Assembly (NCBI RefSeq): GCF_001194135.2
Contig: NC_068990.1
Location: 79,351,623 to 79,393,833 of the forward strand
Origin: Octopus bimaculoides
Lineage: Eukaryota
Reading direction: 5' to 3'
Length of the DNA: 42,211 nucleotides
Part shown: positions 6,878-41,337 of the stretch, one piece after another
How positions within the stretch are numbered: position 1 is the first letter of the stretch
Layout of the letters: each line of letters opens with the position of its first letter
Translations under genes and position numbers: made by a program
The notes under the pieces: model-generated
What the model was told of the DNA's origin: nothing
The model's database searches: none
The model's input: only the letters and a program-made list of their open reading frames with translations

Positions 6878-7055
6878 CAAGGCCAGCAATCTCAGGGAAG
6901 GTAGGGTCTTGTCGATCGCATCGACCACAGAGCCCAACTTATTTTATCGGCCCCGAAGGACGAAAAGCAAAGTCGACCTCAACGGCACTCGAACTCAACG
7001 TAAGAACGGACGAAATACCGCTAAGCATTTTGTCCGGTGTGCCAACGATTCTGCT
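6878..7055 (-). mobile_element. tRNA-derived SINE, family B
   Basis: Homologous to copies at 9469, 20475, 20805, 28053, 36897 and 41150. Confidence 0.8.
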
Positions 7056-8497: not shown

Positions 8498-9468
8498 AAA
8501 AAAAGTTCATCAATATCCAGAGGAATATTTAAAATTTGGATTGATACTCGCTATCTACGATAAACTGTTACCAAGTTATGGGCGAAAAACTAGGATCCTG
8601 TGAATTTTCCGATGTCCTCTCCCCACACCACGGAAAAGATTTTCCCACGAATTTCTTTATAATCGTAATCTATGCCGGTTGAAAGGTATTTATATAAAAA
8701 TTTCATCAAAAAAATGGACACCATTTTCCTAAAAGTTGAGGGAAAAACTCGGATCTTGTGAATTTTCCGAAGTCCTCTCCTCACCCTCCCGTTGATTTCC
8801 GCGCATTTTTTCTTTTTTTTTATACATATTCGTTTCCTACACATTTTTGTTACATCCGTTGCACTAGTTTTTTCTTTTATTCCGTTTCTGGGTGATATTG
8901 TAAACATGAACGAAATTTTGAATAACAAAAATGAAATACCACAAGGAAGCATCAGGATTTTAGTAATGATTCGGTGGGGCATGGCCAAAAATCGGTTGGG
9001 AACCACTGCTTCAAACGGTGCTGTGGATAACAAGGACCGGAACAGGGAAAGAATCCACCGTAGTTTTGCCATATTTATTAACAGGAAACATAGAAGAGAT
9101 ACACCTAAGGAAGATAAAAGAGGCTAAATCGGCTCAGCAGGAACGGACTTCCGAGCACGTATCGGACACCATGTGCCGCCTTCTTTTTCCCCATGTGATG
9201 TCGTTGGTCATCGTCGACAACGACAGACTAATTAATAATAGAAAGTTGGATCAGAGATCAAACCCCCCAACATTTTGGAGGACCCACCCCCACCACCACC
9301 TCTATTCAAAGGAAGTTATGAATATCTCACGTTTTGCAGGAGACCTGTTAAAGTTTGAAATCAAAGAAGCTACGCTATTTTACATTATATTTCTGGTTGC
9401 TATTTGTAATGAATTATTTTCACGTCTAAACCAAACGTCATGATTTTCCATATTATCTCATACACGAA

Positions 9469-9640
9469 GGAGGCGAGCTGGCAGAACTGTTAGCATGCCA
9501 GGCAAAATTCTCAACAGCATTTTGTCCGTCTTTACGTTCTGAGATCAAATTCCGCCGAGGTTTACTTTGCCTTTAATTCTTTCGGGGTTTCTAAGTACCA
9601 AGTGAGCCCTGGGGTCAATGTAATCGACTTAACACCCTCT
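9469..9640 (+). mobile_element. SINE family B
   Basis: Head GGAGGCGAGCTGGCAGAA and body shared with other copies. Confidence 0.8.
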
Positions 9641-9824: not shown

Positions 9825-9896
9825 CTCCCCGGCGGGGAATCGAACCCCGGTCTCCCGCGTGACAGGCGGGGATACTTACCACTATACTACCGAGGA
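9825..9896 (-). tRNA. tRNA-Asp(GTC)
   Basis: 72 nt cloverleaf TCCTCGGTAGTATAGTGGTAAGTATCCCCGCCTGTCACGCGGGAGACCGGGGTTCGATTCCCCGCCGGGGAG, intact A/B boxes, long oligo-T terminator ~7 nt downstream. Confidence 0.97.
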
Positions 9897-10678
9897 CAGG
9901 CCGAAAGCGGAAGGGAAATTAACATTTATAAAATTATAGAAATTATTTGACCCCCCCCATCATAATAATTTTGTAATCAATAATTTTTATTTTTTTATAC
10001 GATAAAACTGTTAGCTCATTAAAAACATCATCGTGTTAAATTATAATCTCCATTACAAGTTATATTTAGCTTTATTTCCCATCATCCTCTTTCACAGGCC
10101 TATGTCAGTGTGTGTGTGTGTTGTCCGTCCATGGCTTTCATTGTTTTACTTTAAAAGCATTATTCTTTCTCTCGCCGTTTTTCTTTTGTTTTCAGAGAAA
10201 AGTCGACAGTTTCACCAAATTATGTCGATAAAATATGCAAATAGAAATATATATAACGTCATTACGTTCAACAACAATGATATCTTTATGATAGTTCTGT
10301 TTAATTATGTTTATACTAAACAGGACAAATGAAATAATTTAAGAGTTTAATAACTTCAACGGCATTAATTATCTTTCGAAAGAGAATTAATTAATATTCC
10401 TTCAAGTTTTAAATTTTATGACGGTTTATTCATTTATAATCGAGGTCTGTCCCAGTTTACGTTGGAAGTCAACGAAAACACAATTATAATCATAAAGATG
10501 GGAAATTATTGAAAAATCCTTCTCGAAATATGCTTATAACACTTAAATGTAAAAATAACAGTGAAAATATGGTGAACTGCAATAAAATATAAGGAAAATT
10601 CATTTAAGAGATAATAAATATTGAAGACTTGACGTGAGTAAAGTACAATATAGCATTTTAGGCATCAGTTTGCCAGCT

Positions 10679-10762
10679 GTCAGGATGGCCGAGCGGTCTA
10701 AGGCGCTGCGTTCAGGTCGCAGTCGGGTCTTCCCGGCGTGGGTTCGAATCCCACTTCTGACA
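10679..10762 (+). tRNA. tRNA-Leu(CAG)
   Basis: 84 nt class II cloverleaf, anticodon loop TTCAGGT, variable arm CGGG-TCTT-CCCG, T5 tract from 10771. Confidence 0.97.
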
Positions 10763-11024
10763 AGAATTTATTTTTGTTTTTTATTTTTTTAAATACTTTG
10801 CTGGCCTCGTACACAAGGAGTAGAATTGTCATTTGATCAGTCCACATCTCACATTTCCTTTTACACCAGCACCGAGAAAAATCGTCGCTTAATGAGACAC
10901 ACTCGGCTAGCAGTCATGCTGCAATAAAATGTAATTAAAAGCAAAATGTGACAAATATTCATATGAAAATCAAGTTAAAAAAAAATGTGTGCGAAAATTT
11001 CTTTTAAAAAAGAAGATCAGTCAT

Positions 11025-11031
11025 CGTCCCT

Positions 11032-11092
<61 letters not shown>

Positions 11093-11098
11093 AGAGAC
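11025..11098 (-). tRNA. tRNA-Asn(GTT)
   Basis: 74 nt cloverleaf GTCTCTGTGGCGCAATCGG...CTGTTAA...GGTTCAAGCCCACCCAGGGACG, T6 terminator downstream. Confidence 0.97.
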
Positions 11099-11397
11099 CG
11101 ACACGAAATCCGATTCTCATATAATTATATTGTAGTTTTGGTTATTGATATGCCTCCCCACCCCCACCCTACTGATGGATTACTAAGCTGGGACATTTAA
11201 TTATTTTCTTCCGTTCTTTTATCTGAATAATTTGGCAATTTGTCTTTTGTGTCTTTCGTTTATCACGGAGCACACACCATATCGTTTCCGAAACCATATC
11301 ATCGTTTCTCTAATCCATATTATCGTCTTTAAGCGCTCAGTTTTTTTACCAATACTGATTAGAAATTTTGCCGTGTTTTAATAAGGATCTTTTTATA

Positions 11398-11453
<56 letters not shown>

Positions 11454-11479
11454 GTCTGTCTCCCAAGATAGATAGATAA

Positions 11480-11530
<51 letters not shown>
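11398..11530. repeat. (CTAT)n then (GATA)n, opposed tetranucleotide arrays
   Basis: Direct reading. The two arrays are mutually complementary. Confidence 0.9.
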
Positions 11531-11532
<2 letters not shown>

Positions 11533-12194
11533 AGCATATGGACCAATACATGCAAACAGAGAGAGAGAGAGAGGGAAAGAGAAAGAGAGACGGATGAAGA
11601 GACCGGTTGATAAACTCATAGATAGACACATGGATTAAAGACAAAACGTAATAATATGAATTCCACCTGATGAGGTGCATACAACCTCCCACACATCACA
11701 ATTTGAGTCGTTAGTGCGGTTGTTTTTCCGTATTGAGTTGGCAGAATCGTTAGAGAGAGTTAGGTTAATATACCACTGGCCTTTAGTGTTCTCGGTCCAG
11801 ATTCTGCCACGGTCCATTTGTCCTTCCAACCAACTGCGAAAGGTATTTTAGAAGACGGATTTCTAATATACAGGGAGAACATCGCAAATCCTTCGACCAC
11901 TCTCGTCTACGAACTTTCTGTTCCTGGGTAGAACAAAATCACCAACATTGCCAATATGATATTCAGAAGAATATGTACACAAACTTCTGTTACGTTATGT
12001 CCACTACCAGTGAAAATCTAACGTTTCTGGTGCTAACTCTTCCTTCTCTCCAAAATCTCCGATTAGGTTGGAAATGTTAAAGAAATTCGAACTCGGAACC
12101 CTATCACCGAGATTATTCAAACTAGTATACAATAAAACTCTTTAGTCATTTTGTTCGTAATTTATGGGTATTCACCGTAAGAAAAAGAAATTCA

Positions 12195-12278
12195 TGTCAG
12201 AAGTGGGATTCGAACCCACGCCGGGAAAACCCGACTGCGACCTGAACGCAGCGCCTTAGACCGCTCGGCCATCCTGAC
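12195..12278 (-). tRNA. tRNA-Leu(CAG), variable-loop variant TTTT
   Basis: Identical to the 10679 copy except one base in the variable loop. T5 terminator downstream. Confidence 0.95.
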
Positions 12279-13035
12279 TATGAGGTACTTAATCTTTACT
12301 TTAGAATATAACTGGAGAGATGTTGGCGTGGGCTCCCACCCCGGCATCCGAAACTCGGAGTTTTATCATGGCTACCGAATAAGTGTCGATATTATGCAAA
12401 TTCCTCTATTTGCATAATATCGAGGTCTCTTTCTTTCTTTTGTTGTCCTTCCTATCAATATATATATAGCTCTTCGAAACGCCGGTGTTAAAACGGAGGT
12501 AGCTGATGAAGTAGAATGTTCTCTATGTGGCTTGTGTGTTTTCGCGTCTCTGTTTTGTTTGCAATGTCCTGTACCCAGATATGCACCTATACATACAGGT
12601 GGATGTCGGTATGCACATACCTGTACGTATATATGCATATACTCATTTACTATNNNNNNNNNNNNNNNNNNNNNNNNNNNNNNNNNNNNNNNNNNNNNNN
12701 NNNNNNNNNNNNNNNNNNNNNNNNNNNNNNNNNNNNNNNNNNNNNNNNNNNNNNNNNNNNNNNNNNNNNNNNNNNNNNNNNNNNNNNNNNNNNNNNNNNN
12801 NNNNNNNNNNNNNNNNNNNNNNNNNNNNNNNNNNNNNNNNNNNNNNNNNNNNNNNNNNNNNNNNNNNNNNNNNNNNNNNNNNNNNNNNNNNNNNNNNNNN
12901 NNNNNNNNNNNNNNNNNNNNNNNNNNNNNNNNNNNNNNNNNNNNNNNNNNNNNNNNNNNNNNNNNNNNNNNNNNNNNNNNNNNNNNNNNNNNNNNNNNNN
13001 NNNNNNNNNNNNNNNNNNNNNNNNNNNNNNNNNNN

Positions 13036-13066
<31 letters not shown>

Positions 13067-13532
13067 CAATGTGTGTATATGTATATAGGTATGCATGTAT
13101 GTATATATCTATGCGTGTGTGTTTCGGCGTTTGTGTTTGTCTCCTCCTTCACCACACCAACACCACCACCACTGATAACCGGTGCTGGTTTGTTTACGTT
13201 TAGCGGTTCGGCAAGACAGGCTGAGAGAATAAGTACCAGATTTTAAAAAGCAGATACCGGTTTCAACTGGTGGTGAGGGACAAGCACAAGACTTAGGTGC
13301 TGTTTCTGAAAGATCGACCTAACAAGGGCTAATCCGTAATCTCTGATGTATTCGTGACAACAGATAAGAGAGTATAATCCGAATTGATGGAGTGGTAATG
13401 GATGAAGACTCACAGAAAATTCAAACAACTCGATGGGCTTACACACCACTGATATACATATCTAGTTTACTTTACCTTTGGTGAAAAAAAATTATGTTAA
13501 AACCAAAATTATGAAGAATAAAAGAAGCGTCT

Positions 13533-13616
13533 TGTCAGAAGTGGGATTCGAACCCACGCCGGGAAGACCCGACTGCGACCTGAACGCAGCGCCTTAGACC
13601 GCTCGGCCATCCTGAC
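13533..13616 (-). tRNA. tRNA-Leu(CAG)
   Basis: 84/84 identical to the 10679 copy, inverted orientation. Confidence 0.97.
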
Positions 13617-13968
13617 AGCTGACAAATTTATGTGATTCAGACTTAGTCTTACATGAGAGCGAGATGAGCTGATTACATTACTTTTCTCTCTTTTTCTTTC
13701 TCTCTCTCTCCTTCTCTGTTACTCTCTCTTCTTTTTGTGTCTCTCTTTCACTCTCACGTCATATGCATACCATCTGTTTGTCTGTCTCTCTTTCCCCTCT
13801 CCTTCCCTTTCTCTTTATCTATCTATCTCTCTATCTATCACCCATCATCTATCTCTCTCTCTTTCTCTCTATACCTCTCTCTCCATAAACGCAAGACAGC
13901 ATATGACTCAGACTTACAAGCATATGAGTATATGTGGGTGTGTATGTATGTTTGTATGCATATATGTA

Positions 13969-19763: not shown

Positions 19764-19850
19764 ATGTCGGACAGTGAAGGAAGCAGCACGTTGTCCAGTT
19801 CGAAACGGCCCAGACATTCTTTGTCTCAGGATGGATCTGGCGATGACAAT
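19764..19850 (+). CDS. EED: EED exon 1 ([29 protein letters not shown])
   Basis: ATG in aagATGt context, GTATGT donor at 19851, phase 0 matches exon 2. Low-complexity N-terminus, so supported mainly by splice signals and promoter context. Confidence 0.85.
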
Positions 19851-22800
19851 GTATGTACAATGTTAAACACAACACAATCATGATTTACCTGTTTCTTCTT
19901 TTCCTAAAGAGATTTTCTCTCAAACTTTCTCCCTCTTTACACACACGCTTCAACTAATATACAATAAACCTCTCCCTCTGTCTATTATAGACACACATAT
20001 ATGTGTGTATATACATAATTTTATATATATATATATATATATATGTATATACATACGTACATTTTTATATAAATAAGTGTTAGCGTCTGCTTACACACAC
20101 ATCGCATGGTTTGTTTTTAAGTCTTCATTTCTTTATTTAATCTTAATTTTCTTTTTCCTTTTATTACTTTTCTGTTTTGAATATCTTCTCTGACATTAAG
20201 AATTACGAAAGAGTATCTTTAATCACTAATGTCTCGGTAAAAGGCTGAAGGCCAACTAAACGATGCGGTTCCAAATCCTGGTTATTCGTGTTTTTCATTG
20301 TTTTGTGAAAAGAACCATTGTGCTCATTCCAACATTTGTCGTCTTCAATTTGAATTTTAATGTTTAAAATGTTATTAATACAGTAAAGGAGAGGAAACTG
20401 ATTCAGGCTTTTTAGATAATTTGGTGTTCACTCCCTCTCTCACATAAATTCGTCTTGTGTTTAATCTCCATCATTATTATATTGTCACCAAGGTCGACTT
20501 TACCTCTCATCCTTTCGGGGTCGGTTAAATAAGGGCTAGTTGAGCACTGAGGTCCATATAATCGACGTACCCACTCCTCCAGAATTCCAGGCCTTGTGCG
20601 TAGAGTGGAAAAATCGGATCTTGTGAATTTTCCGAAAGTCCCCTCCCACAGGGTCATGAGCCTTTTTTTTTTTTTGCATTTTCGTTTTCTACATACTTGT
20701 TAACATCCACCAGGCTGGTTTGTTTCTTTTTTGTTCCCGGTTGAAGATATTTATATTGACCGATTATTATGCAGTCACTAAATCTGCTATAAATATTCTT
20801 TTCTTCTCTAGACACAAGGCCCGAAATTTTGGGGGAGGGGGCCAGTCGATTAGATCGACTTCAGTACGCAGCTGGTACTGAATTTATCGACCCCGAAAGG
20901 ATGAAAAGCAAAGTCGACCTCTGCGGAATTTAAACTCAGAACGTAAAGACAAACAAAATACCGCTAAGCATTTCGTCCGGCATGCTATTAAATCTGCTAT
21001 AAAGAGTAACCAACTCTCCCTTAAATCGCACCGCAAAGGACACATTAGATAATGTAGTCCAAGTGGGCCTACTCCGTCGTGACTGACCTATGTTTAAAAA
21101 CTAACAAAATTATTTAATACAAAGGAAAGGTGCTTAGTCTAGGACAAACGGGTCTATGGAGGTTTCGACTTCTTTATGTTTCATTTATGTCTCTGTTTCC
21201 ATTACATTAAAACATCTTCATTTTTTATTTTCACCTCAAATATCTGAGGTTCCATAAGATTTTATAAAACAAGAATAAGTTTGTCCTAGTCGTATTAAAA
21301 TTTTTGACATGTCTCGCATTAAGCTGAAGAAATTATTACCAAATATTTTGGATCCATTTGAAACCTTGTTCAATCCCCGCTAGTCTTAGCTTCACAAAAC
21401 CAGATCTTTTGATTGTCTTAGAATTTTGTTTTTTGAGAAGAAATTTAACCAAAATTCTTCATAGTTTCAAAATCTCTTGTTGAAGTTGTCACTAATTATC
21501 TCCCCTCTTTACTAACTTTCTGTCAGTTTTTTTTTTCTGTAGAAACTTCCTCTCTCTCTCTCTCTCTCTCTCTCTCGCCCGGATGAGAAAACACTTCAGG
21601 CTAACTTCCACTACAAGCAGTATAAGTCCATTTTTCCATGCTTGCATGGGTTGGGGGTGAGTCGCCTTCACGATAGCATCTGGCCACTTGTTGCAGTCGC
21701 TTTGTTCAGCTTCCTGAGATAAAACTTCAACCACTTCTTCCTCTTTTGCTTTTCCTCTTCCACTGTTCCTTTCTATTTTGATTGATTGATGCTTCATGTC
21801 CTCATTTTCCCCCTTTACACCTCAAATATTCAGACCAACGCATTTTTCTTACTAATAAGCTTTACATCTGATTCAACCCAATTTTTGTCTGTGCTTCTAC
21901 CATTCATGTACTCTAACCTTTTACATCCAGCGAAGCATGCTTGCCTCCTTCTTGTCGTCCCTTTTCACATTTTCCATAATCCCCATATTCTAATGCCATA
22001 CACCCCTAATACTATCTATTCTACAATTGGAGAAAAGAATTCCTTTGTTATGAACAGAATTAATAATTCTCTGAAAAATGTCCACGCTTTGCTTACTCTA
22101 TCATGTCTTTGCAACTCTCTGTCATTGCTTATTTTGGAACCGAGGTACTGGAAGTTATCAACAGCTTATACAGAATTTGAAAGAATATATTTTTCAAATG
22201 CTGGTGTTATTTAAAAAGCACCCATACTAGTTCCTCCTATAAAATTCTTGTACTGGTTCCAAGTATAAAAAACTTGTACTGGTGCTGTGTAAAAGCACCC
22301 AGTTCACACTCTGTGAAGTGGTTGGTGTTAGGAAGGGCATCCAGCCATAGAAACCAAGCCAAAACAGAGAACTGGAGCCTGGTGCAGCTCTCTGGTTTGT
22401 CTGCTCCTGTCAAACCATCCATTCGGTGCCAGCATGGAAAATGGACATGGAATCATGATGGTGATTTTACTGCTAATTATTCCTGTATCATCATCATTTA
22501 GCATCCGTTATCCATCCTGGCATGGGTTGGATGGTTTGACCAGGGCTGGCAAGGCTGGAGGGCTGCACCAGACTCCAGTCTGATTTAGCATGGTTTCATC
22601 AGCTGGATGCCCTTCCTAATGCCAACCACTCCAAGAATGTAATAGGTGCTTTTATGTGTCACCAGCACAGGTGCCATTTGCATGACACCAATATCTGCCA
22701 CAATAGCTTGATGGGTCTTAAGCATGACATAATGCCAAAGGTCTCAGTCATTGCCTCATCCTCCTCAAATCATTCCTTACTGTCTTGGAAGTTGGTTCCA

Positions 22801-25800
22801 AAGACAAATATGCCCATATATGGTACTTTATTATGAACATGTTCATAATAACCATATAGTTTTTTTTATGGATCCACTTTTGGATATCTGTGGAGCATCT
22901 TCAGTTTGTTGCAGACTAACAGATCCTAGCGTAAATACTATGACCAACTGCTGTCATCATGTAACAGGTTTTCTAATCATTTGTATTGTTAAACTGTTCA
23001 TTAAACAAAATTGTCTTATTTCTGGTAAAACATGGCATAACTTGTACAAAGCCTTCTGTTGGAAATGGGTCTCAGTTCATTGAAGAATGTTACCTATGAT
23101 GGACCAGTACCCTAGTTAGGACCTATGATGGACCAGTACCCTAGTCAGGAGTGCATTCACCTTTCATCTGCTTAAAACCAAACCTAAGTCATCAAAGGTG
23201 TCATCGTGTGTTGGATATTTTGACTTTGATGACACTTGAGCAAAAGACTTCCAGATTAAGCGTGAGTTTTCTCCCACTGGATGAAGCTACAGCTTTGCTT
23301 CATCTGGATTCTTTCATAATGTTTTCTTGACAGAGATACTGGGTTGGTATGTCATTGCCTTCCCCAGTTCAATGGCCATTGGCTTACAACGAGCTCATCT
23401 GGACTTTGACAGGTCTTGCTTTTAATCCTGTTGGGTGTCCAGATACCCCCCCCCCTCGCAACTATAGCGAGCTACTCAAGTAGGGGAGCCAGTTTAATTG
23501 CTGACCACCTGACTATGAAACAGGTAGAACTGGTCCACGTGGTACCAGTAACAAGTCTCATCAACCTGTGATGGGATCCCTGACCTAACTTGTAGAGTTA
23601 AGTACTGGTCCTAAAAAGTTCCTTGGGTTGCAGATGACATTTACATACATTGTAAGCAGCCAGAACACTGTGTACCTGTTGTGTGCTTCATTGCTATGCT
23701 GAGTTTTACACCTTGTAAGTGTTGTCTGGAAAGAGATGGTCTCCCCACAGTCTAGAGAAGCACTGTATGGAGACATAGTGTTGGTGGGGGAGGCTTTATT
23801 TGATGATCAGGCTTTTTAACCCTGTGAATGCCACACCATATTCTAGTTTCCTTTTCATTGACTTTTCGTTAATTTTACCATATAAAGTATTATTGATTCT
23901 TCGTTTTTTTTTTCTTGTCTGTTGACAGGATGACATGTCCAGTACAACCAGTGCCACAATAGATGATACAATTCCAAGTGAGACACCACCACAGAACAAT
24001 ACTCGGCGCTATGGACGAGGAAAGAATCGGTTTCGAAAATCAAAACTTCAGTATAAGCTTGTAAATTATTTAAAAGTAAGTGAAGAATTTTTCTTTTGTT
24101 TTAGCATTTTTATTGATTAATGCAATATCTAGATTGTTATCGATTGATTGATCATTGCCATCATTGAATGCCCCTTCTCCATGCTGGCATAAGTTGGACA
24201 GTTTGACAGCAGTTAGCAATCCAGAGCACTGCACCAGACTCCAATTGTCTCTTTTGGCATGGTTTCTATTCGATCCAGAGCTATACTAAATCCCTTCAAA
24301 GTCTACTCTGCCTTTCATTCTGCTGGAAATAAAGTACGAGTCAAGTAGTGAGGTTGATGTAATCAGTTATTCTTCTCCATCAATTTTGTGTTTTTGCGAA
24401 GAACCATTATTGTTGTTGTTGATAGTGGGATTGGTAGAGCATCTGACAAATGCCTTGTGGTATTTAGTTAGATCTCTTCATGTTCTGAGTTCAAATCCCT
24501 CTGACATTACATCTGCCTTTCTTCCCTCAATAAAAAGAAAGTACAGGCCAAGTACAGAGCTCACATAAACTGACCAGTAAAGTACCAGTCCTGTTTGGAG
24601 AGTATTTAAATCAATCCCTCCCCAGTTTGTGATTTTGTGTCAATGTCAGAAAGCTTTGTAACTATGACAACAATGGATGGCAGCTCCACAGTTTTATGTT
24701 CTGAGTCCATCCTTTTGGGGCTGATGAAATTGTTGTCAACTATTCACTATCCTCCAACCCAAACTCCCTTGTACCCTCTTACCCCACACTAATGACTCTG
24801 TGTTGTTCATTTGTCTGATTTTCTTCTCTTTGTTTTATTCATCCAGGAAGATCATGGACAACCCATTTTTGGGGTACAGGTCAATTACAATCATAAGGAA
24901 GGAGAACCAATAATCTTTGCTACAGTTGGTAGCAACAGGGTAAGGACTTACAACCTCTTCCTTGTCTGTTGACATGCAGAAAACCTCCACACACGGAAAT
25001 GATTGCACAAAAATCTCCATGTTTTTCTTGAAAAACAAATAACCTTGTACAGTTTTCTATTTTCCCAAGTAAATTGAGATAATGACCTACCAGTCAGATT
25101 GCTATCCAGCCCTGCATTTGGTGATACCGTAATTTCTATAAATAATATCTGCAATAAATTAGACTCCAGGCCATGGGTTGTTCTATGCTTGAATATTATA
25201 TGTTCTTATAAAGCAACCAAGTTAAAACAGGAGGAACTTTGAGTCTCTTGAACAAATCACATCCAGCTTGCTTTAACCTACTTCAGTCACCACCTGAATC
25301 CTACAAAGCATCCAAATGTGCAACATATGAACAACCATGTTACATTGGCTACACCAACATACAGTGACATGTGACACTATCTGCAACATGCCAATGCAGT
25401 GATACTATTCAATCCACACCATACCCCTGCTTCCAATCCTGTACACACCACACAATTTACCCTCACTGCTTTACCATACAAGCCAAGACCCACACTGCTG
25501 TACTGTATAGTTTGCATTGCCATTCATGACTGTTCTTAAATACCCACACAGCTAAATTATAGTTTATATAATACACCCAGCTCTTCTCATATTGCTTATC
25601 CACCCTCTCACACTCTATCCCAAACAGTGTTCTTCGCATTAATTCTAACACTTCACAATATGTTCTGATTGCTACCACACTCTATTTTAATATGTAATAA
25701 TCACAGGCATGGCCGTGCAGTAAGAAGCCTGCTTCCCAACCACATGGTTCTCGGTTCAGTCCCATTGCTGAGCACCTTGGGCAACTGTCTTCTACTATAG

Positions 25801-28800
25801 CCACAGGCCAACCAAAGCCTTCTGAATGGATTTGGTAGACAGACACTGAAAGAAGCTGTCATATATATATATATCCCTCTCTCTCTCTCTTTTGGAGAGA
25901 GGCACATACACAGACATATACACACACGGCAGTAACTTCCGCCTACCAAATTCAATCACAAAGCTTCGGTCGGCTTGGGGCTATAGCAGAAGACACTTGC
26001 CCAAGATGCCACGCGGTGGGACTGAACCCGAAACCATGTAGCTGGGAAACATGCACCAGTGCCCATCTTGCAGCGGCTTGGTGTACAGACGTCAGATCGT
26101 AAACCTTTTTGCTCGGCGAATTTGGTCTCTTGTCAAACCACTAAGTTACAAGGATGCAAACATACCAACACTGGTTGTCAAGCAATAGTGGGGGATAATC
26201 ACTGACACAAAGACACAAATGCATTTGTGTGTGTGTGTTTTTGTGTCAGTGATTATCCTCCACCATCGCTTGACAACCAGTGTTGGTATGTTTGCATCCC
26301 TGTAACTTAGTGGTTTGACAAGTGACCAATATAATAAGTGTCAGGCTGAAACAAAAAATAAGTCCTGAGGTCGATTCATTTGACCAAAATTTCTTCAAGG
26401 CAGGGCCGCAGCATGGCCACAGTCTAATGACTGAAACAAGTAAAAGATAAGAGGATTATTGTTGTTTAATTCCAAATAATTTAAAACCTCTCTTCCTTCT
26501 CCTCATCTCTTATTTATCTTTAATTATTGCTGTTGTTGTTGTCATCATCTAACATTTGTATATTTTTTCACAGGTTGGCATCTACGAATGTCACGAGAAT
26601 GGTAAAATCAAACTTCTACAAGCCTACGCTGACCCTTCTGTATCCTTTTTTTTACCTGAGTCTATTCTGGAATGTTCTCTTTAACTACCAAACAGGATGA
26701 ATGAGATTTGTACAACTAATTTATAATTATGGAAAGAGGGCAAAAGATGATGCCAACGGCAGGGCCTCACGCTGGATCCTTAACGGTATCTTGTTTAACC
26801 TTTTAGCATTCAGATTACTTCTCTGTCCAATGTAATGCTTATTTATTCACATTGTTTTGAATTAATCATGCATTATCTTGTAGCTTCAAGATTTCCATGA
26901 TGTGACTGTTTATTTTTAGTTAGACATTATAGGGTAGGTGTGAGGGGCTGGATCTAGTCAGTTTAAATGTAAGACAGAATATTTGGGGCCAGATGTGGCT
27001 GGTTTAAATGTTAGACTTATCTTATTCTTCTATATTTCTTCTTTAATCCTGTCAGCAAATGACTTTACATAATTGATAAAATAACTGCTGATCATGTTCC
27101 AAAGTCTGTGAATGCTTGGAGATTTTGTTGGTGCCTATGATTGGCAGCAATGTCAACACTACAACAGGTTGGAAGCAGATCTGTTGTGAAAATAATTGAT
27201 AGCTCAGCCTGAAATATTGTTTTGTCCACAAAGTAAAGAAAAAAAAGAAAAAAAGAATTTCCTTCCAAAAAGGGTCGTAACACTTTAGGCTGCTCTGATG
27301 AAGGTAAATCAATGGAAGGTTGTGTGTGATTGGTGCTGAGGATTACAGCATTGATAGAAACCAAGAACTTAAGAGATTCCAGTTAGTGGACTAACATGAG
27401 GATATAAACGAATTAGGTTGGTGGATGAGGTGAGTCAAAACCTGGAAGTTGTTGAAACAAAGATAATTCAGCTTCAATTAATGACTAGAAGTGTGTGTTC
27501 AGAGCCAACTATGTCCAACTAAAAAGAGTGAATCTATTTAGTTGGACGTTTGTCTTCCATTGGTTCAATCACTGGATGAAGTCGGAAGAGACAGAACTAC
27601 GGCTCATATCACCTCAGTTTTGTTGATATGTAATCGTGATTGATGGCTGCAATATGGGTGATGGAGGAGGAGGAGACCGATTTAGTTGTTAAGTGGACTA
27701 AAGAAGTAATTAGGTGTGTAATGGACACATGACTATGGGGGTGGGGGTGGGGGGTCATCTGATATGAATCAATGATCCCTGCTGGCATGAATACTGGTTA
27801 ATGAAAGATGTAGGGCTGTAGAAGTGGTAAGAACTATGGTGTTGGGTGTTGTTAATTGTGTGTTGTGTTGTGTCCTTAATTCATGCAAGACAGAGGAAAA
27901 CTTCTATTGTTGTGCTTGGACATTTGATGATGTGACAGGTCAACCATTGTTGGCCACAGGTGGGATGAGAGGCATTATAAGAATAATAAGTCCTGTCTCC
28001 ATGCAATGCATCAAGGTAAACCATTATGATAATTCTTCTTCTTACTATTATTAAGGTGGTGAGCTGGCAGAATCGTTACGACTCCAGGCCAAATGCTTAG
28101 AGGCATTTCACCTGTCTTTATGCTCTGAGTTCAAATTCTGCCAAGGTTGACTTTGCCTTTCATCCTTTCAGGGTCAATAAAATAAGTACCAATCCCGTCT
28201 CCCAAAATTGCTGGCCTTGTGCCAAAATTTGAAATTATTACTACATATTTTTATACTTTATGTAGCAAAAGCATGATCACTCTTGACCGTTAGCTGCCCA
28301 CATTGTGGCTTTTTACTTTTAGCTACCTATTTTTGGTTCATCACGTGATGGTCCAGTCCATTTAGCTTTACTTGGATTGTCCACCCTTTAACATGATGGA
28401 CTAGCCTAGTGTCCCTATGTCAGCTATTTAAGAGATGATTTTTCCCACTAATTCCTTAGGCAGGTGAGTTTTCTATGAGCGGGTTTTGGATCTTCAACAA
28501 TGAGAGCAGTGTATTCACTTTGCAGCTTCAGCGAGAACAGAATTGCAACCAGAGTCTTTGATGCTAGACTTCACGTTTTTCTCACCTTTCATCTTCAATT
28601 TCTATAAGCATTTGAATTTATGTAATGTATTGACAATTATTAATGTCCTAGCATTTGCTGTGTTTCACTTTAGGTAATAAATGTTTCAGTGCAGTCAACT
28701 TGCCTTTCCATTTTCTTATTCATGACATAACATTACCAGGCCATAAACTGCATTTCATACAACATTCATTGCTAAACCTACAATGTATCTGCTGTTATTG

Positions 28801-31800
28801 TTACATATTTTTACAGCATGCTTTCTACCTGCAGTGATTGCCTGTCACTGTTTTGCTCTGTTTTTCTTCAAAAATTTCCCTTCCTCTTCCCTGACTACAA
28901 GGGTTCAAACTCTAGCCTGTTCTTTGTTTACTTTCAGAATTTTATAGGGCATGGCAATGCTGTCAATGAACTGCGATTCCACCCCAAATACCCTAACATG
29001 ATGTTATCTGTGAGTAAAGGTAAGCCACTTGATTATATTAATTTTACTTGATGGTCATGGGAGGGGAAATCTTACCTTACTTGAAAACAGGTGAGGGTTG
29101 GGGACAGGAGAGGTATCCAACCATAGAAAATCTGCCTCATGCAAGCATGGAAAAATGGACATTAAAATGGTGGCAGTGGTTGTTGTTGTTTTAACTTACT
29201 TTTCTAATTGTTGTTGCAGAGATTATTCCTGTTGTTGAGGAATCAGTGTTTAGATGAGTAAAATCTTGGATAATTTGTTCTTAGATTATCAATTTGTATC
29301 TCACTGAAGTATTTTATTTTACTTCCATTTTTCCATACTTGCATTAATTAGACCAGTTGTTCTCAACCAGGGTCCACATAAGATTTCATTGCTGAAGTTT
29401 ATCTGCAGTAAATTGGTTAGACTACAACCAAATATTATAACAACTTTTTTATACAATTTCTTATAATATTTTATTCATCTTCATCATCATCCATGCTGGC
29501 ATAGACTGGACCTAATTATAAAAATATAATTGAATTTCTTAAAACTTCAAATGGTTATGAGGGTCCAGTAGAGTAAAATAGGGATCAAAAGGGGTTAAGA
29601 ACCACTGGGTTAGACAAATATATTATTGCAACGTTGTTTTACAGCTAAATGTCCCTTCATGTTTTTAATCCTTACCCTAAGAGATCCCTTGTGGTTTTGA
29701 ATATGTGAGCAGCAGACAGGTCATTGACAAAAGAACTGTCCCTCACAACTTTCATCCCAGTATAAATACACAATGGTCTTTTTTTTTTTTAGTTTCTACT
29801 TCTCGAATCCACTCATAAGGTTTGATCCGTCTTTTGTTACAGTAGAAGGCAGCTGCCCAAAGTGTTGCCCCAGCTGGGACTGAAATCGAAGCCACATGGT
29901 TGGGAAGCAAACTTCTTGATCATGCAACTCTGCCTGTGTTTATTTGTCTGAATAAAATAATTTATTTCTCAACCTCTGTGGCTAATGACTAATTAAGACC
30001 TTTCCAGAGGCTGACGAGGGTGACATTGAATAAAGCAGTAAACAGTGATGGAATCTGTTTCTGCTGCAGTTAATGTTAGAGATGCTGGAGCTGAAGAACC
30101 GGACGTTTCCAAACATCTGTGGTTCAGCGGGGTGGGGTGGGGAGGTATTAAGTTGACCTTTATTCTTATTAGTTTGTCCTCGGTCACATGGGGGAAGACA
30201 TTGAGGCATGACCAAGGTCAGGCAGTGGTGGTCAGTTGGCACTGAAGGCAAGGAATTCACTTTGGACTTGCATTCTTCATGTTTTCTTTGTGCAGCTGCA
30301 ATTCTTTTCTGTTTGTGGCGGGTGGCACGTTTGTTGGTGCAGCTTTGCCAGGCAGAGCACCGTTTTGTGCTTGCATTCTTCAGGTGTCATGGTTGATCTC
30401 AAAGCTTTTGAGTCTCTCCTGCTGTAAAACAGTCTCTCAGGGAGTTGCATGTCAAGCATTCAAACAAAAGCGGGTTTGCCCACCTGACTTGTGCTCATGC
30501 TTGCCAAGTCAGATCAAGGGAGGACCTCCTTTATTCTAATGATTCACTAAGTATACAACATTTTCCTCTCAATACCATTCTCTACAGTCTGGCATTGTGT
30601 ATTTACGTTGCATTACATGTGATACTGTGTTTAAATTCTTTTTGTCTCCTCTTAGATCATGCTTTACGAATATGGAACATCAAAACAGATATATGTGTAG
30701 CAATTTTTGGTGGAGTTGATGGTCACCGAGATGAAGTTCTAAGTGCAGTGAGTTTTATTATTATTATTATTATTATTATGTAAATCTCCACTGTTCTTTG
30801 NNNNNNNNNNNNNNNNNNNNNNNNNNNNNNNNNNNNNNNNNNNNNNNNNNNNNNNNNNNNNNNNNNNNNNNNNNNNNNNNNNNNNNNNNNNNNNNNNNNN
30901 AATTGTAATACTCATATTTATATTTGTGTGTATGAGAGAGATGTATCCGCATAAGTGTCATGTGATTGTTGTTGTTCATTTCCAGTCTTCCATGAAAAAG
31001 CATGTCTAATCATGGAGAAATATTTCCTTGCTTGGAAACAGGTGAGAGTTGGTGACAGAAAGAGTATCTTGACATCTTGGACTGATACCTTTTACCATTC
31101 ATCACACCAACCCTCAGCCTTGTGAGTGAAACTGGGAAGATGGAAACTGTACAGAAGCCTACCTTAGGGATTATACCTTTAATTTCAAAGGTACAGCCTT
31201 GTCACTGTCAGAGACTTGCATTGTTGTGAAGTACTCAGCCACTTATATGTTATTTCAGTGAGCCTGGTAGTCCAGTAGATAACAAGAGATGGATTTATTT
31301 CTCATCTTTATTGAAATTCCAAGGTTAAAGGAGATGAAAACTTGAAAACTGTTGTTGTTGTTTTTATCCTTTCAGGACTTCAACATTGATGGCAGTTTCA
31401 TTGTGTCTTGTGGCATGGACCATTCCTTGAAAATTTGGAACTTGAAGACAGACGCTATCATCAAAGCAATGAAAGATTCCTACACATACAACAGTACCAA
31501 AAACAACAGGTAATGTGGATTGACCTTTCCTTTTTCTTGTTTCTGTCATTGGGGACTGTGGCCAAGCTGGGGCACTGCTTTCAAAAATGTTAGTCTAACA
31601 AATTGATCTCAGGTCTTTTTTTTCAAAGTCTGGTACTTATTTTATCGATACAATTTGCTGAACTGATAAGTTATGGAGACATAAACACACTAGCACCAAT
31701 TGTCAAGTGGTGGTGGCAGATAGACACATGCATGTGTGTGTGTGTGTGTGTGTAATTAATATCCTTATAACAATCACAATGGTTTGGAATTTCATTTCTT

Positions 31801-34205
31801 CCATTATTGCTGACAATGAGGTAAAGATTTTGTCATGGTTTTTGAGTTAAAGAATATCTTTATCTGACTCAGCAGATTAAGATGAGATTATCTTTCACAC
31901 TAGAAAGCTTTCTCAGGATTTCATCTGAAGATTATTTTTGATGTTTATTTATTTCCAAATTTCTTTTTGTTTTAAATTCCTGGTCTTTCTTCCAAAACCT
32001 GATTTTGAAAGTCAGTTTAACCCATGCCAGCTTGGAAGATGGACGTTAAAAGATGAGAATTAGAGAGGCTTTGTTGTATTGATATACTATTAGTAACCTT
32101 AAGAAAGTTTTGATCATCTCTCTATCTCTCTCTCTTTCATTTCTAGACCATTCCCCACAGTATCCAACCATTATCCAGATTTCTCCACCCGTGACATCCA
32201 CAGAAATTACGTGGATTGTGTTCGTTGGCTTGGACGTTTTATTTTATCGAAGGTAACCAGTTTCATTTCAACAAATATAAAATCCTATGTGTATGTATAA
32301 AATACGAAGGGCAAGTGAGTTATTTAATATTTGTGTAACTTTTAATAATTAATGGAAGAATCCTGTTATTCTGGGTTTGTGAAATATTAATCAGTGAAAA
32401 GATTTAATAAATATATTTCAAGTAAATTTGTATTGACCCTTGCACACCAGATAAACCAACAATAAATCGTGTGTGTATGTGTGAATAATTAGCAACGCAG
32501 AACCCAGTTTCTAGAAGCTTCAGTTTCTGATAAAATATATATACTCTAGTTTATGTGCTGAGTACTTTTTTACCCCTTTGTAAACGCATTCAACATATGT
32601 GTTAGTGTGTGTACACACAAACCACATCCATTTATAGGCATGTATTCACTCATAAGATTATGGATAGTATCACAAGCAGTTTAGACCAGTTGTGTAGTAT
32701 TTTATAAAAGAAATTAAATGTTAAAACAACCTGGTTCAAGACTATTGTTAGGTTTACAGTAATATTAATGCTATAAGGTTACAGTATAAACCTGTTGTGT
32801 GATGTGGATGTCTGGAGTATAATAGATTTAGTGTCAAATGTAAGGCTGTTGACTCCTCCATTTCAGTTGTAGTTTAATAGCAACACATTGTTTGTACCAG
32901 GGAGAAGAAAGAAAGTGGATATTTGTAGATATTTAACATCTCTTCTTCCCCATACAGACAAGGGTTTGATATAATACAGCGTATCACCACTTGTGATCCA
33001 TCTTCATAATTTCTTATGTCTTCCTCTGCCAGCTTTTGTCACATCAAAACCTGTGCATTTGTCTCCCATCAACATTGACTGATTCATTTAGTGTCACCCA
33101 CTGCCATCAATTGTCTGTCTGTCTCTTATCTTGTTCTTCCTCTCTACCCTCCACTCGTCTTCTACATTCAATGTTAATGTAATCACAACCATGTAGCTTC
33201 ATTGTTTTATCCATGTTTAATGACTCACCAATAAAGGGAGAAACCTTTTGTTGTTCACTGGAGACAACAGCTTCCTCAATGTTCTCTTTTTATTTTCATC
33301 ATGATGACATCAAATGTAGCCATGCAAGTGAAAAACAGGCATGACCACCCACACTTCACATTTGAGTGTTCAGATGTTGGAGGGTGGAAAGCACCAGGAA
33401 TATAAAAACCTTAGAATTGAAATTTCAGTTGGAAATTTTCAAGAACTCTTTGAGCAATGAAGATATTGGACTATTAACTGCTTCATCATACATTCTGTCC
33501 TGTTTACAGCCATTGTGCTATGCTGCTGGACAAGACATTTTTTAATATAGATGATGAAATTTGCAACTCCCCCCTCCCCTCCACTGATATGGAAAATAAA
33601 TTTAAAACCAGAAAAGAAACAAGAATTTATTTTGCCTCAAATCTGTGAAGAATTGTTCCCAGTCTGCCAAATTTACTCCCCCCGTTCCCAATCTTGAAAC
33701 TACCCACACTTCCTGTTCTTAATTTTATAAGTTGCATCTCTTTCAGTCATGTGAAAACTGTATTGTCTGTTGGAAACCTGGTCACCTCAACCAAACCGAT
33801 CTAAAGCATTCAGATTCCACAACAACCATCTTACACAGATTCGAATACCGTGAGTGTGATATCTGGTATATGAGGTTCTCTATGGATTATTGGCAAAAGG
33901 TGGGTGAAAAACTTACTCTTCTCATCAAAATGGATTGTTGTTGTTGTTGTTGTATCTAAATATATTGGTTGTTTGTGATGCGCTGTTGATGTTCAGAGCT
34001 CAGGTTAACGCCTGTTTTCTCTCCTGACAATTGTTGGACAATTTGACTGGATCCCAATATGTCCAATGACTGCATTGAGCTCCAATGTCTGTTTTGGTAT
34101 GGTTTCCATAGCTGGATGCCCTTCTTAATGCCAACCACTTCACAGACTGGACTGGGGTGCTTTTTATGTGGCACCTGCTCTAGTGTGGTTATCATGCAGC
34201 TTGTA

Positions 34206-34245
<40 letters not shown>

Positions 34246-35989
34246 TTGCCTTTCATCCTTTAGGGGTTGGTAATAAAATAAGCACCAGTTGAGCACTGGG
34301 GTCAATCTAATAGACTTACCCCACCCCCAGACTTACTGACCCTGTGCCAAAATTTGATACCACCCTCATCATCATCATCATCATTGGCAGTGTTAGCTAT
34401 AGCCTAGTCACCCGTATTACGAACCAGGTGATAGACGAAGGAGTCNNNNNNNNNNTTATTATTATTTCAGATAAACACAGTCAGGGTTTATCAATTTGTG
34501 TTATGGAATATTTGAATCTTCTTTATTTCAGTGACCTTCCGTAACCTCTGTTTGCCGGACGATGTGTGTCTTAGTCATGGTTGAGTGATCCCTTGTAATG
34601 TTTTTGGTTTCTTTGCAGGTTATGGCACTTGGTAATCAAGTTGGTCGGCTGTTTGTATGGGACATGGATGTGGATGACCCTACAATGTCCAGGTAAATAA
34701 TGCCATGTCCGACTACTTTTTTGGGGGACCCTGTTATCATTATTGAGGAGGATGACAATGATGACCATTGTCATCTCAAAAGTGTTATTGTCAGGGATCA
34801 GATGGTGAGTTCGACATTCTCAAAGATGGAGACCCCAGTTTCTGTCAGTTTCTTCATCTGTCCTTGGTGCATAGAATGTGCCAGGCTTCTAACTGGCACT
34901 TTGTTGGTTACAAGTCAAGGGTTTCAGTTGATCCGATCAACAGAACAGCCTGTTCATGAAGTTAACATGCAAGTGGCTGAGTACCCCACAGACACTCATA
35001 CCCTTAACAGAGTTTGACAAGACTGGCCCCTTTTGAATTTGCAGGTACTACTCACTTTTGTCAGCTGAGTGGTCTGGAGCAGTGTGAAATAAAGTGTCTT
35101 GCTGAAGGACACAACACACTGCCAGGAATCGAACTCCCGATCTTATGATCATGAGCTGAATACTCTTAACCATTAAGTCATATGCCTTCACATGCCATGG
35201 TTAAGGTCACCATGGAATACATGTGACCAATGCGTTAATTCTAACCCTACAATTATTTCTATACCTAAAGACATGGTTCAATATTATAATGATAATAAGG
35301 AAGTGATTAGAAATCTATTGAACCATGCAGAATGTAGATGAGTTGGGTGGGCGGTATGTTTATTTGATATTTCAGTCTTAAAATATTCAAAATATTGAAA
35401 ATGAAATGTTAAACAACAGGTGAACTATTTCTAAACCCTGGGGTTACCAACTGACCATCTGAAGGGAAGACAAGCAGAAATGGTATTAGAATTAGAGAAC
35501 TTTTGACTTGTAAGATGTGACTGTAAGCGCTTAATAGCGACCAGTTTTTCAAGACGTGATCCGTTGACATATTTAACACCACCTTTTGGTCCTTCCGTGC
35601 CTTTAGTGGGGCCCAGTCTGTTACAAGCGTTTAGTCCAGGTTTCTGCCCTGAAAGTGAGTTGCTTGTTGTGTTTGAACATCTTTCAATGCTACGAAGACC
35701 CTTTTAAGACCCTTTCCTACCTCAACCTTACAGATGCCTTGCAAACATGATAATTCCTCTTCTTCTTCTGACCAAATCATAACAATGAATTTACCCACCA
35801 GACTTAGTGACTTTTTGTCTTCATTCTCCTACAAAATGTTTCTTTTTCCCATTCTTTCTCAGGTGCACTGTTCTGATAAACAGTAAATGTTCAACAGCGA
35901 TACGACAGACTGCGTTTAGTCGTGATGGCAGCATCCTTCTCTCTGTTTGTGACGACGGCACAATATGGCGCTGGGACCGGGTGAAATAG
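19764..35989 (+). CDS. EED: Polycomb protein EED/esc (PRC2 WD40 subunit), spliced, 12 exons, 428 aa
   Basis: join(19764..19850,23929..24075,24847..24939,26574..26639,27890..28015,28938..29019,30656..30747,31376..31509,32147..32252,33747..33899,34619..34692,35863..35989) = 1287 nt, open to TAG. All introns GT-AG with matching phases. Translation has diagnostic EED motifs [99 protein letters not shown]. Confidence 0.97.
20475..20612 (-). mobile_element. SINE family B, 3' part (EED intron 1)
   Basis: Homology to other family B copies. Confidence 0.7.
20805..20985 (-). mobile_element. SINE family B (EED intron 1)
   Basis: Close homology to 6878-7055 and 41150-41337. Confidence 0.8.
21800..22010 (-). 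mobile_element. Degraded RTE-type LINE coding remnant
   Basis: [16 protein letters not shown] resembles the RTE post-RT motif ExxMLRWMxxV. Confidence 0.5.
22295..22770. mobile_element. Two RTE-tail elements, tail to tail (22295-22475 +, 22492-22770 -)
   Basis: Both carry the GGAAGGGCATCCAGC module and a (GAT/CAT)n tail like 6188. Confidence 0.75.
23092..23149. repeat. 29-bp tandem duplication
   Basis: ACCTATGATGGACCAGTACCCTAGT(T/C)AGG x2, one mismatch. Confidence 0.9.
23929..24075 (+). CDS. EED: EED exon 2 (DDMSSTTS...[13 protein letters not shown])
   Basis: Polypyrimidine tract + CAG acceptor, GTAAGT donor, 147 nt. The basic stretch before the first WD40 blade is as in EED. Confidence 0.92.
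24847..24939 (+). CDS. EED: EED exon 3 ([31 protein letters not shown])
   Basis: CAG acceptor, GTAAGG donor, 93 nt, strong EED motif. Confidence 0.97.
25705..26050. mobile_element. Two SINE family A heads in inverted orientation (25705-25860 +, 25928-26050 -)
   Basis: Both match the family A 5' half, separated by AT/CT/AC microsatellite. Confidence 0.75.
26122..26329. repeat. ~100-bp-arm fold-back inverted duplication of a SINE A 3' half
   Basis: Centre ACACAAATG|CATTTGTGT (26221/26222), six mismatches plus a (GT)n bulge. The right arm continues as SINE tail to ~26452. Confidence 0.95.
26574..26639 (+). CDS. EED: EED exon 4 ([22 protein letters not shown])
   Basis: CAG acceptor, 66 nt, followed by U12-type donor GTATCCTTT. 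Confidence 0.96.
26640..27889 (+). other. U12-type (minor spliceosome) GT-AG intron, EED intron 4
   Basis: 5' site GTATCCTTT, branch motif TCCTTAAT at 27873-27880 about 10 nt before the AG (27888-27889), no polypyrimidine tract. The other 10 donors are U2-like. Confidence 0.9.
26799..27015. mobile_element. Probable piggyBac-type MITE remnant in intron 4
   Basis: TTAA followed by CCTTTTAGCATT at the left end. The right end AATGTTAGA is a degraded inverted counterpart. Confidence 0.4.
27890..28015 (+). CDS. EED: EED exon 5 ([10 protein letters not shown]...SPVSMQCIK)
   Basis: AAG acceptor preceded by TCCTTAAT branch motif, GTAAAC donor, 126 nt, in frame. Confidence 0.95.
28053..28235 (+). mobile_element. 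SINE family B (intron 5)
   Basis: Head AAGGTGGTGAGCTGGCAGAATCG and shared body. Confidence 0.8.
28938..29019 (+). CDS. EED: EED exon 6 ([27 protein letters not shown])
   Basis: tttcAG acceptor, GTAAGC donor, 82 nt, phase 1 end. Confidence 0.97.
29354..29607. mobile_element. hAT (Charlie-like) MITE
   Basis: Termini CAGTTGTTCTCAACC / GGTTAAGAACCACTG, degenerate 8-bp TSD AATTAGAC / GGTTAGAC. Confidence 0.7.
30656..30747 (+). CDS. EED: EED exon 7 ([31 protein letters not shown])
   Basis: cttAG acceptor, GTGAGT donor, 92 nt. Confidence 0.97.
31376..31509 (+). CDS. EED: EED exon 8 ([21 protein letters not shown]...STKNNR)
   Basis: tttcAG acceptor, GTAATG donor, 134 nt, phase 2 end. Confidence 0.97.
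32147..32252 (+). CDS. EED: EED exon 9 ([35 protein letters not shown])
   Basis: ttctAG acceptor, GTAACC donor, 106 nt. Confidence 0.97.
33747..33899 (+). CDS. EED: EED exon 10 ([12 protein letters not shown]...[15 protein letters not shown])
   Basis: tttcAG acceptor, GTGGGT donor, 153 nt. Confidence 0.97.
34619..34692 (+). CDS. EED: EED exon 11 ([25 protein letters not shown])
   Basis: ttgcAG acceptor, GTAAAT donor, 74 nt, phase 2 end. Confidence 0.97.
34887..35190 (-). mobile_element. SINE family C (intron 11)
   Basis: tRNA-like head at the 35190 end (GGGAGTTCGATTCC B box), body homologous to 3405-3588. Confidence 0.75.
35863..35989 (+). CDS. EED: EED exon 12, terminal ([41 protein letters not shown])
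   Basis: tctcAG acceptor, TAG stop at 35987-35989. Confidence 0.97.
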
Positions 35990-36877: not shown

Positions 36878-36896
36878 GTTATTATTATTATTATTA

Positions 36897-37110
36897 AGGT
36901 GGTGAACTGGCTGAATTGTTAGCATGCCGGACAAACTGCTTAGCAGCATTTTATCCATCTTTACATTGTGAGTTCAAATTCCACTGAGATTGACTTTGCC
37001 TTTCATCTTTTCAGGGTCGATAAATTAAGTACCAGCTGAATACTGGGGTCGATGTCATTGACTTACCACCCCCTCCCCCCAAATTTCAGGCCTTGTGCCT
37101 TTATTAAGGA
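36897..37110 (+). mobile_element. SINE family B
   Basis: Near full-length match to the 9469 and 28053 copies. Confidence 0.8.
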
Positions 37111-41149: not shown

Positions 41150-41337
41150 CACCAGGACAGAAATTTCTGAGGATGGTGTAAGCCGATTACATCGACCCCC
41201 AATGCTTTACTGGTACTTATTTTATCGACCGAGAAAGAGATGAAAAGGAAAGTCGACTTTGGCAGAATTTGAATTTAGAACGTAAAAACGGATGAAATAA
41301 ACATTTTTCCCGGTGCGTTAACAATTCTGCCAGCTTA
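41150..41337 (-). mobile_element. SINE family B
   Basis: Homology to 20805-20985. Confidence 0.8.

Follow-up and report, generated by a model that had tools for sequence, protein, structure and literature searches.

EED is the WD40 subunit of Polycomb repressive complex 2 (PRC2), and in human and mouse its gene is known to contain a minor, or U12-type, intron. Eed is listed as a minor-intron gene in U12DB (Livyatan 2013), and MIDB places the EED/Eed minor intron at human chr11:86255288-86256386, with the 5' splice site (5'ss) GATGTATCCTTT and the branch-point sequence TGTTTCTTAACT. In mouse, the efficiency of Eed splicing, followed by quantitative PCR (qPCR), differs between embryonic stem cells (ESCs) and neural progenitor cells (NPCs) (Livyatan 2013). 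Loss of U11 in the mouse limb leaves Eed mis-spliced, reduces H3K27me3 and brings a shift in developmental timing; the minor-intron genes that are mis-spliced earliest in that setting include Eed, and Eed knockout reproduces core features of the U11-null limb (2026 preprint). A limiting role of minor splicing for Eed and PRC2 has been proposed in print for mouse (2013, 2026). A pan-eukaryotic survey that included Octopus sinensis found minor introns to be relatively enriched in molluscs (Larue 2023), and our literature search returned no paper on the octopus EED intron specifically. Here we describe intron 4 of the EED gene of Octopus bimaculoides, contained in a stretch of 42,211 nucleotides (contig NC_068990.1, positions 79,351,623 to 79,393,833; hereafter the window, in whose coordinates positions are given). 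We hold it to be, with high confidence, a genuine U12-type GT-AG intron (26640-27889) and the octopus ortholog of the vertebrate EED/Eed minor intron. Because the human and mouse intron has already been catalogued and functionally studied, its octopus ortholog is not novel.

The octopus intron agrees with its human and mouse counterpart in gene, codon position (between Y-x-D-x-x and x-x-E-N-F-Y), phase 0, GT-AG subtype and intronic donor GTATCCTTT, as well as in its 66-nt upstream and 126-nt downstream exons, in being the sole U12 intron of the gene and in the early stop codon that retention would expose. The 5'ss catalogued in MIDB, GATGTATCCTTT, is the donor that we mapped at the homologous rodent intron (GAT/GTATCCTTT, the slash marking the splice junction). 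Differences are found in the exon bases that precede the donor, TCT in octopus as opposed to GAT in rodent, and in the branch site, TCCTTAAT at 10 nt in octopus versus TTCTTAAC at 16 nt in rodent Eed; moreover, functional data (U11-null limb, ESC/NPC qPCR) belong to mouse only. When set against generic U12-type GT-AG introns in MIDB, intron 4 has a 5'ss 12-mer, TCTGTATCCTTT, identical to those of minor introns in human TMEM150C and mouse Slc44a4, and its branch motif and spacing lie within range. Its phase 0 departs from the general bias of minor introns against this phase (about 22% on average, Larue 2023).

The intron was delimited from a complete model of the gene. A human EED sequence, used as a guide only, was the tblastn probe that outlined eleven collinear coding blocks on the + strand at 23.9-36.0 kb, and exon boundaries were then set by reading the sequence directly. 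The spliced model is identical (100% identity across 100% of the query) to NCBI XP_052827283.1, 'polycomb protein EED-like isoform X1 [Octopus bimaculoides]'. Residues 20-427 of the protein align with human EED (PDB chain 6c23_L, E = 8.7e-187), vertebrate EED entries at 62% identity are among the matches listed for it, and the top database matches are all named EED, esc or FIE, a full-length similarity that places it in the EED/ESC/FIE family of WD40 subunits of PRC2. Counting coding exons from 19764-19850, the number 'intron 4', given in a first-pass annotation of this sequence, is right. NCBI also annotates an isoform X2 of O. bimaculoides EED, 397 amino acids long, that begins at the internal methionine of exon 2 (MSSTTS...); its start within 23929-24075 points to a different first exon or start site. 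The features of the window and the orthologous introns are collected in Table 1.

Exon 4 ends in ...GAC CCT TCT at 26639, directly abutting the donor (TCT/GTATCCTTT), which matches the U12 consensus /RTATCCTTT at nine of nine positions, while the branch motif TCCTTAAT matches its consensus at seven of eight, the last position being a permitted Y. An exhaustive search of protein-to-genome splits at the exon 4/5 junction gave two solutions one base apart, and only the one at 26640-27889 has GT-AG ends. The 3' end of the intron at 27889 reads ...gtgTCCTTAATtcatgcAG; if the second A of the branch motif (27879) is taken as branch point, it lies 10 nt from the last intron base, G27889, and the terminal ttcatgcaag holds no AG earlier than 27888-27889. 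In U12 introns the branch point lies roughly 8-20 nt from the 3' splice site, and intron 4 has both this short spacing and the use of the first downstream AG that are expected of the class. The donor, branch motif and coordinates proposed in the first-pass annotation are thus all present in the sequence where it had placed them. Its remark that the intron has no pyrimidine tract was slightly overstated: pyrimidine runs in the last 40 nt do not exceed 5, a length reached by the branch motif itself, versus maxima of 6-14 in the ten other introns, and there is no continuous tract, but the last 20 nt, which are G/T-rich, are 65% pyrimidine. The pyrimidine fraction of the last 20 nt (0.65 versus a mean of 0.71) was discarded as a class marker, since it does not discriminate in a T/G-rich 3' region, and the longest run was used in its place.

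For class assignment, donor and branch matrices were derived, in place of intronIC, from the 77 human minor introns of MIDB Table S2 part 1 (Olthof 2019) and applied to every intron of octopus EED and of ten orthologous genes. The donor of intron 4 reaches +15.7 bits, compared with a training mean of 13.6 and minimum of 5.3, and its branch site +12.0 bits (training mean 11.4), while the donors of the ten other octopus EED introns, which are GTRAGT-like, range from -26.0 to -1.0 bits. Across all loci, the donors of 104 U2-like EED/FIE introns have a mean of -13.3 (sd 6.2, maximum +2.3), without overlap with those of 8 U12-like introns. These motif scores, together with the 10-nt spacing and orthology to the catalogued human and mouse EED minor intron, support the U12 assignment, and bear out the earlier claims that intron 4 is of the U12 class and is the only such intron in the gene.

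An alternative would be an ordinary U2-type GT-AG intron whose likeness to the U12 class is accidental, or a hybrid also open to removal by the major spliceosome. The GT-AG ends and the pyrimidine content of the 3' region would suit such an intron, and some introns are reportedly spliced by both spliceosomes (PMC10853781). Both motifs also occur at chance frequency, with GTATCCTT found twice in the window against 1.4 expected and TCCTTAAY three times against 4.3 expected; motif counts alone were therefore rejected as proof of a U12 intron, and the case rests on exact placement and orthology. The sole + strand GTATCCTT in 42 kb falls exactly on the protein-defined exon 4/intron 4 boundary, and one of only two + strand copies of TCCTTAAY in the window lies 10 nt from the intron 4 AG, so that both motifs stand exactly where a U12 intron needs them; by a rough estimate, the joint chance of the two placements over 11 introns is about 1e-7. 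Furthermore, intron 4 matches the U1-type donor consensus CAG/GTAAGT at only three of nine positions (five to eight of nine in the other ten octopus introns), its longest pyrimidine run is the 5 nt mentioned above, and the orthologous introns of seven other animals have both motifs, with a clear GTAAGT donor seen in plants. A U2-type or hybrid intron is strongly disfavoured already, and we consider it highly improbable.

Several points nevertheless weigh against the U12 assignment. The scoring matrix was built on only 77 human introns; the pyrimidine content of the last 20 nt makes the lack of a tract a matter of degree; the octopus case draws on sequence signals and on annotated or transcript-derived proteins; the transcript-length contigs described below come mostly from other cephalopods and not from O. 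bimaculoides; and an Rfam scan of the 42-kb window found no U11, U12, U4atac or U6atac gene there. The scan returned tRNAs only, and nothing within intron 4. A second perfect TCCTTAAC was observed inside the intron (26777-26806), 137 nt from the donor and with the next AG 22 nt on; the motif could serve as a decoy or as a cryptic U12 3' site. It was set aside as an alternative to the 3' site of the gene model, given the 22-nt distance to the AG and a stop codon soon after, which would make the mRNA unproductive.

Use of the 26639/27890 junction receives indirect support from annotated and transcript-derived cephalopod proteins. Octopus vulgaris EED (AWJ58231.1, 428 amino acids), a separate GenBank protein, has the same junction peptide as the RefSeq model, and several cephalopod contigs of 1.36-1.89 kb, assembled from public sequencing runs, encode 409-419 amino acids of EED. 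Since the octopus gene spans 16 kb, these contigs are too short to contain the introns. The junction peptide reads YADPS/T(E/D)ENFY or YADPS/SEENFY among cephalopods, and YADPS/TDENFY or YADPS/SEENFY in the transcript-length contigs.

Whether the orthologous intron is of the U12 class in other animals had been left open by the first-pass annotation, and the comparison was made here: it is U12-type in seven other animals, from coral to mammal. Genomic contigs encoding EED proteins were obtained by homology searches (the cnidarian EED by querying with choanoflagellate EED), their introns were mapped by exact protein-to-genome splicing, and intron positions were placed on a MAFFT protein alignment. 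Representatives at 50% identity and a cluster look-up yielded mostly distant relatives, transcriptome-only ones among them (flatworms, a choanoflagellate and MMETSP transcripts), which were unsuited to the mapping of introns. The intron is found at alignment column 177, in phase 0, in octopus, Lingula, cockroach, starfish, amphioxus, rodent and coral, and the homologous intron of Pecten is shifted three columns by a 3-residue insertion; it sits after Y-x-D-x-x and before x-x-E-x-F-Y. In the seven other animals a GTATCCTT donor is paired with a TCCTTAAC-like motif that lies 9-16 nt before the AG, and each of the eight animal EED genes with a U12-like intron has only one. In this small survey, the U12 class at this site dates at least to the cnidarian-bilaterian ancestor. 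All eleven octopus EED intron positions are common to rodent, amphioxus and Lingula, so it is the whole gene structure that is old, beyond intron 4 alone. The intron is absent from EED of the sandfly Phlebotomus papatasi (L009), where only two small 5' introns are kept, and EED of Owenia fusiformis (L008 501-1748) is entirely intronless and resembles a retrogene.

Some peculiarities of the orthologous genes were observed along the way. In Pecten (L006 10901-11140 and 11172-13024), the end of exon 6 is repeated by a 240-nt local duplication, and an AT-AG intron at this place, needed to obtain the annotated protein, is probably an assembly or annotation artefact and not a real non-canonical intron. 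An amphioxus isoform (L003 2995-4518) has extra small exon(s) that add a 12-residue insert, FLTYTYCLQHVK, after MQCIK, and rodent isoform X1 (L001 21308-29790) has a 25-residue insert, SGRAILHSHQQCMRDPVSPNLRQHL, after LILSK; both are absent from octopus.

Table 1. Coordinates of EED, intron 4 and other features of the Octopus bimaculoides window, and of the orthologous introns in other animals (L numbers denote the genomic contigs of the orthologous loci).
Feature	Position	Strand	Remarks
EED coding region	19764-35989	+	12 coding exons, 11 coding introns; spliced translation = XP_052827283.1
EED coding exons 1-4	19764-19850, 23929-24075, 24847-24939, 26574-26639	+	
EED coding exons 5-8	27890-28015, 28938-29019, 30656-30747, 31376-31509	+	
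EED coding exons 9-12	32147-32252, 33747-33899, 34619-34692, 35863-35989	+	stop included
Exon 4	26574-26639	+	66 nt, phase 0-0, 22 residues; upstream of U12 intron
Intron 4, probable U12-type GT-AG	26640-27889	+	1250 nt, phase 0; sole GT-AG split reproducing the protein; matrix scores
U12-type 5' splice site GTATCCTTT	26640-26648	+	read in sequence; binding of U11, then U6atac, expected
In-frame TAA on intron 4 retention	26682-26684	+	after 14 extra codons
Branch-point sequence TCCTTAAT	27873-27880	+	U12 snRNA binding expected; likely branch A = 27879
3' splice site AG	27888-27889	+	first AG after branch motif
Exon 5	27890-28015	+	126 nt, phase 0-0, 42 residues
tRNA Asp-GTC	9825-9896	-	Rfam and ARAGORN agree
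tRNA Leu-CAG	10678-10763	+	Rfam and ARAGORN agree
tRNA Asn-GTT	11025-11098	-	Rfam and ARAGORN agree
tRNA Leu-CAG	12195-12278	-	Rfam and ARAGORN agree
tRNA Leu-CAG	13532-13617	-	Rfam and ARAGORN agree
SINE-like repeat copies	28040-28210; 36885-37034; 20873-20973 (-); 41211-41298 (-); 9467-9588; 6937-7054 (-)		
Orthologous intron, rodent	L001 11324-12720		donor GAT/GTATCCTTT, branch TTCTTAAC
Orthologous intron, Branchiostoma (amphioxus)	L003 2467-2868		branch TCTTAAC
Orthologous intron, Patiria (starfish)	L004 1448-2044		branch TCCTTGAC
Orthologous intron, Lingula	L005 1551-1671		only 121 nt; branch TCCTTAAT
Orthologous intron, Pecten (scallop)	L006 5721-6791		branch TCCTTAAC
Orthologous intron, Periplaneta (cockroach)	L007 3887-6336		branch TCTTTAAC
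Orthologous intron, Oculina (coral)	L012 2452-3138		perfect donor, weak branch motif CCCTAAC

The comparison extends to FIE, the plant ortholog of EED. In Arabis alpina and Marchantia polymorpha, FIE intron 2 lies at the same alignment column and in the same phase (SY.DED/KDESFY) and, as in octopus, follows a 66-nt exon. The likeness ends with position, phase and preceding exon, for the plant intron is U2-type where the octopus one is U12-type: its donors, GTAAGT and GTAAGA, score -14.4 and -6.8 bits on the U12 donor matrix, and a TCCTTAAC-like branch motif was not found in either of the two species scored. Conversion from minor to major type is considered easy and one-directional (Larue 2023), from which it would follow that an old minor intron was converted in the plant lineage. 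The simplest reading of the two plant genes is that the EED/FIE intron was ancestrally minor and became U2-type in plants.

Translation into intron 4 confirms the earlier claim that a retained transcript would read through 14 residues and then meet the TAA listed in Table 1. The product would stop at about residue 131 of 428, without most of the region that aligns to the human EED chain, and in all eight species retention leads to a stop within 4-27 codons (6 in rodent, 14 in octopus). The rule by which such a premature stop leads to nonsense-mediated decay (NMD) derives from mammals, and by that rule retained octopus transcripts may be expected to be degraded. The architecture of the flanking exons allows a different outcome, one absent from the first-pass annotation. 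A length of 66 nt is common to the preceding exon of octopus, rodent, amphioxus, Lingula, Pecten, Arabis and Marchantia. The following exon measures 126 nt in the first four of these, 135 nt in Pecten and 123 nt in the two plants, and every one of these exons is in phase 0-0. Octopus exons 4 and 5 are multiples of three, so skipping either keeps the frame, and failed minor splicing could give in-frame exon skipping. It could even be that failure leads mainly to such skipping or to cryptic U2 splicing, yielding an internally deleted EED, and not a lower level of EED mRNA, in place of retention and NMD. Alternative splicing around minor introns has been published for cases where exon-bridging between the spliceosomes is disturbed; what is usually reported for minor introns, however, is retention, and in intron 4 the premature stop comes only 14 codons in. 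We regard predominant skipping or cryptic U2 splicing as rather unlikely.

In U12 splicing, the U11/U12 di-snRNP (small nuclear ribonucleoprotein) binds donor and branch together, and U6atac later replaces U11. For intron 4, the di-snRNP would recognise the donor GTATCCTTT (through U11) and the branch TCCTTAAT (through U12) jointly, the U4atac/U6atac.U5 particle would join, and U6atac would displace U11 at the 5' site, with the 3' AG picked by its 10-nt distance from the branch A and not by a polypyrimidine tract. Removal of the intron would join ...YADPS to TEENFY..., a step that full-length EED would require. Splicing of intron 4 in octopus may accordingly depend on the minor small nuclear RNAs (snRNAs), and the step may be rate-limiting or regulatory; that PRC2 dosage in octopus could be gated by minor-spliceosome activity is a reasonable proposal by analogy with mouse.

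A serious rival to a regulatory role is that intron 4 is simply an inherited U12 intron, constitutively and efficiently removed, that serves no particular regulatory function in octopus and belongs to a minor class persisting neutrally. From a survey of more than 3000 genomes it was concluded that most minor-intron evolution may be due to neutral processes, and that minor introns are no more conserved than major ones (Larue 2023). Within EED itself, the ten other octopus intron positions are equally conserved with rodent, amphioxus and Lingula, which makes the conservation of the intron 4 position unexceptional, and its loss without replacement in the sandfly, together with the intronless gene of Owenia, indicates that EED can function without it. 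Conservation of the U12 signals, and not just of position, in eight lineages from cnidarians to mammals is less easily accommodated, given that minor-to-major conversion is thought easy and one-directional (Larue 2023). The early mis-splicing of mouse Eed after U11 loss, with reduced H3K27me3 (2026 preprint), and the shift in how efficiently Eed is spliced between ESCs and NPCs (Livyatan 2013) also speak for a role. On balance we put the odds of neutral inheritance as even. A more far-reaching reading, in which the intron predates the plant-animal split as a U12 intron, is kept in animals by selection coupling PRC2 dosage to the minor spliceosome and was converted to U2 in plants, appears to us rather unlikely as a whole. 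Under it, PRC2 output in octopus would be tunable through the levels of U11, U12 and U6atac, as reported for the mouse limb.

Two further elements of the window were recorded. Five tRNA genes are clustered upstream of EED at 9825-13617, and a SINE-like interspersed repeat (SINE, short interspersed nuclear element) of about 150 nt occurs in copies 74-83% identical to one another, one of them in EED intron 5 just 3' of exon 5 and another in intron 1.

The comparative picture that emerges, with a U12 intron from coral to mammal that was lost in some lineages and is U2-type in plants, is consistent with published general trends. Its additions are modest, namely a U12 intron in a cephalopod, a U12 class that in this small survey reaches back at least to the cnidarian-bilaterian ancestor and a U2-type counterpart in land plants, and octopus EED is a usable comparative case and not a discovery. 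EED is essential for PRC2 and for H3K27 methylation, so that developmental gene silencing could be tied to the activity of the minor spliceosome through one slow or fragile step in the splicing of its pre-mRNA, a connection already put forward, and in part demonstrated, in mouse (Livyatan 2013; 2026 preprint).

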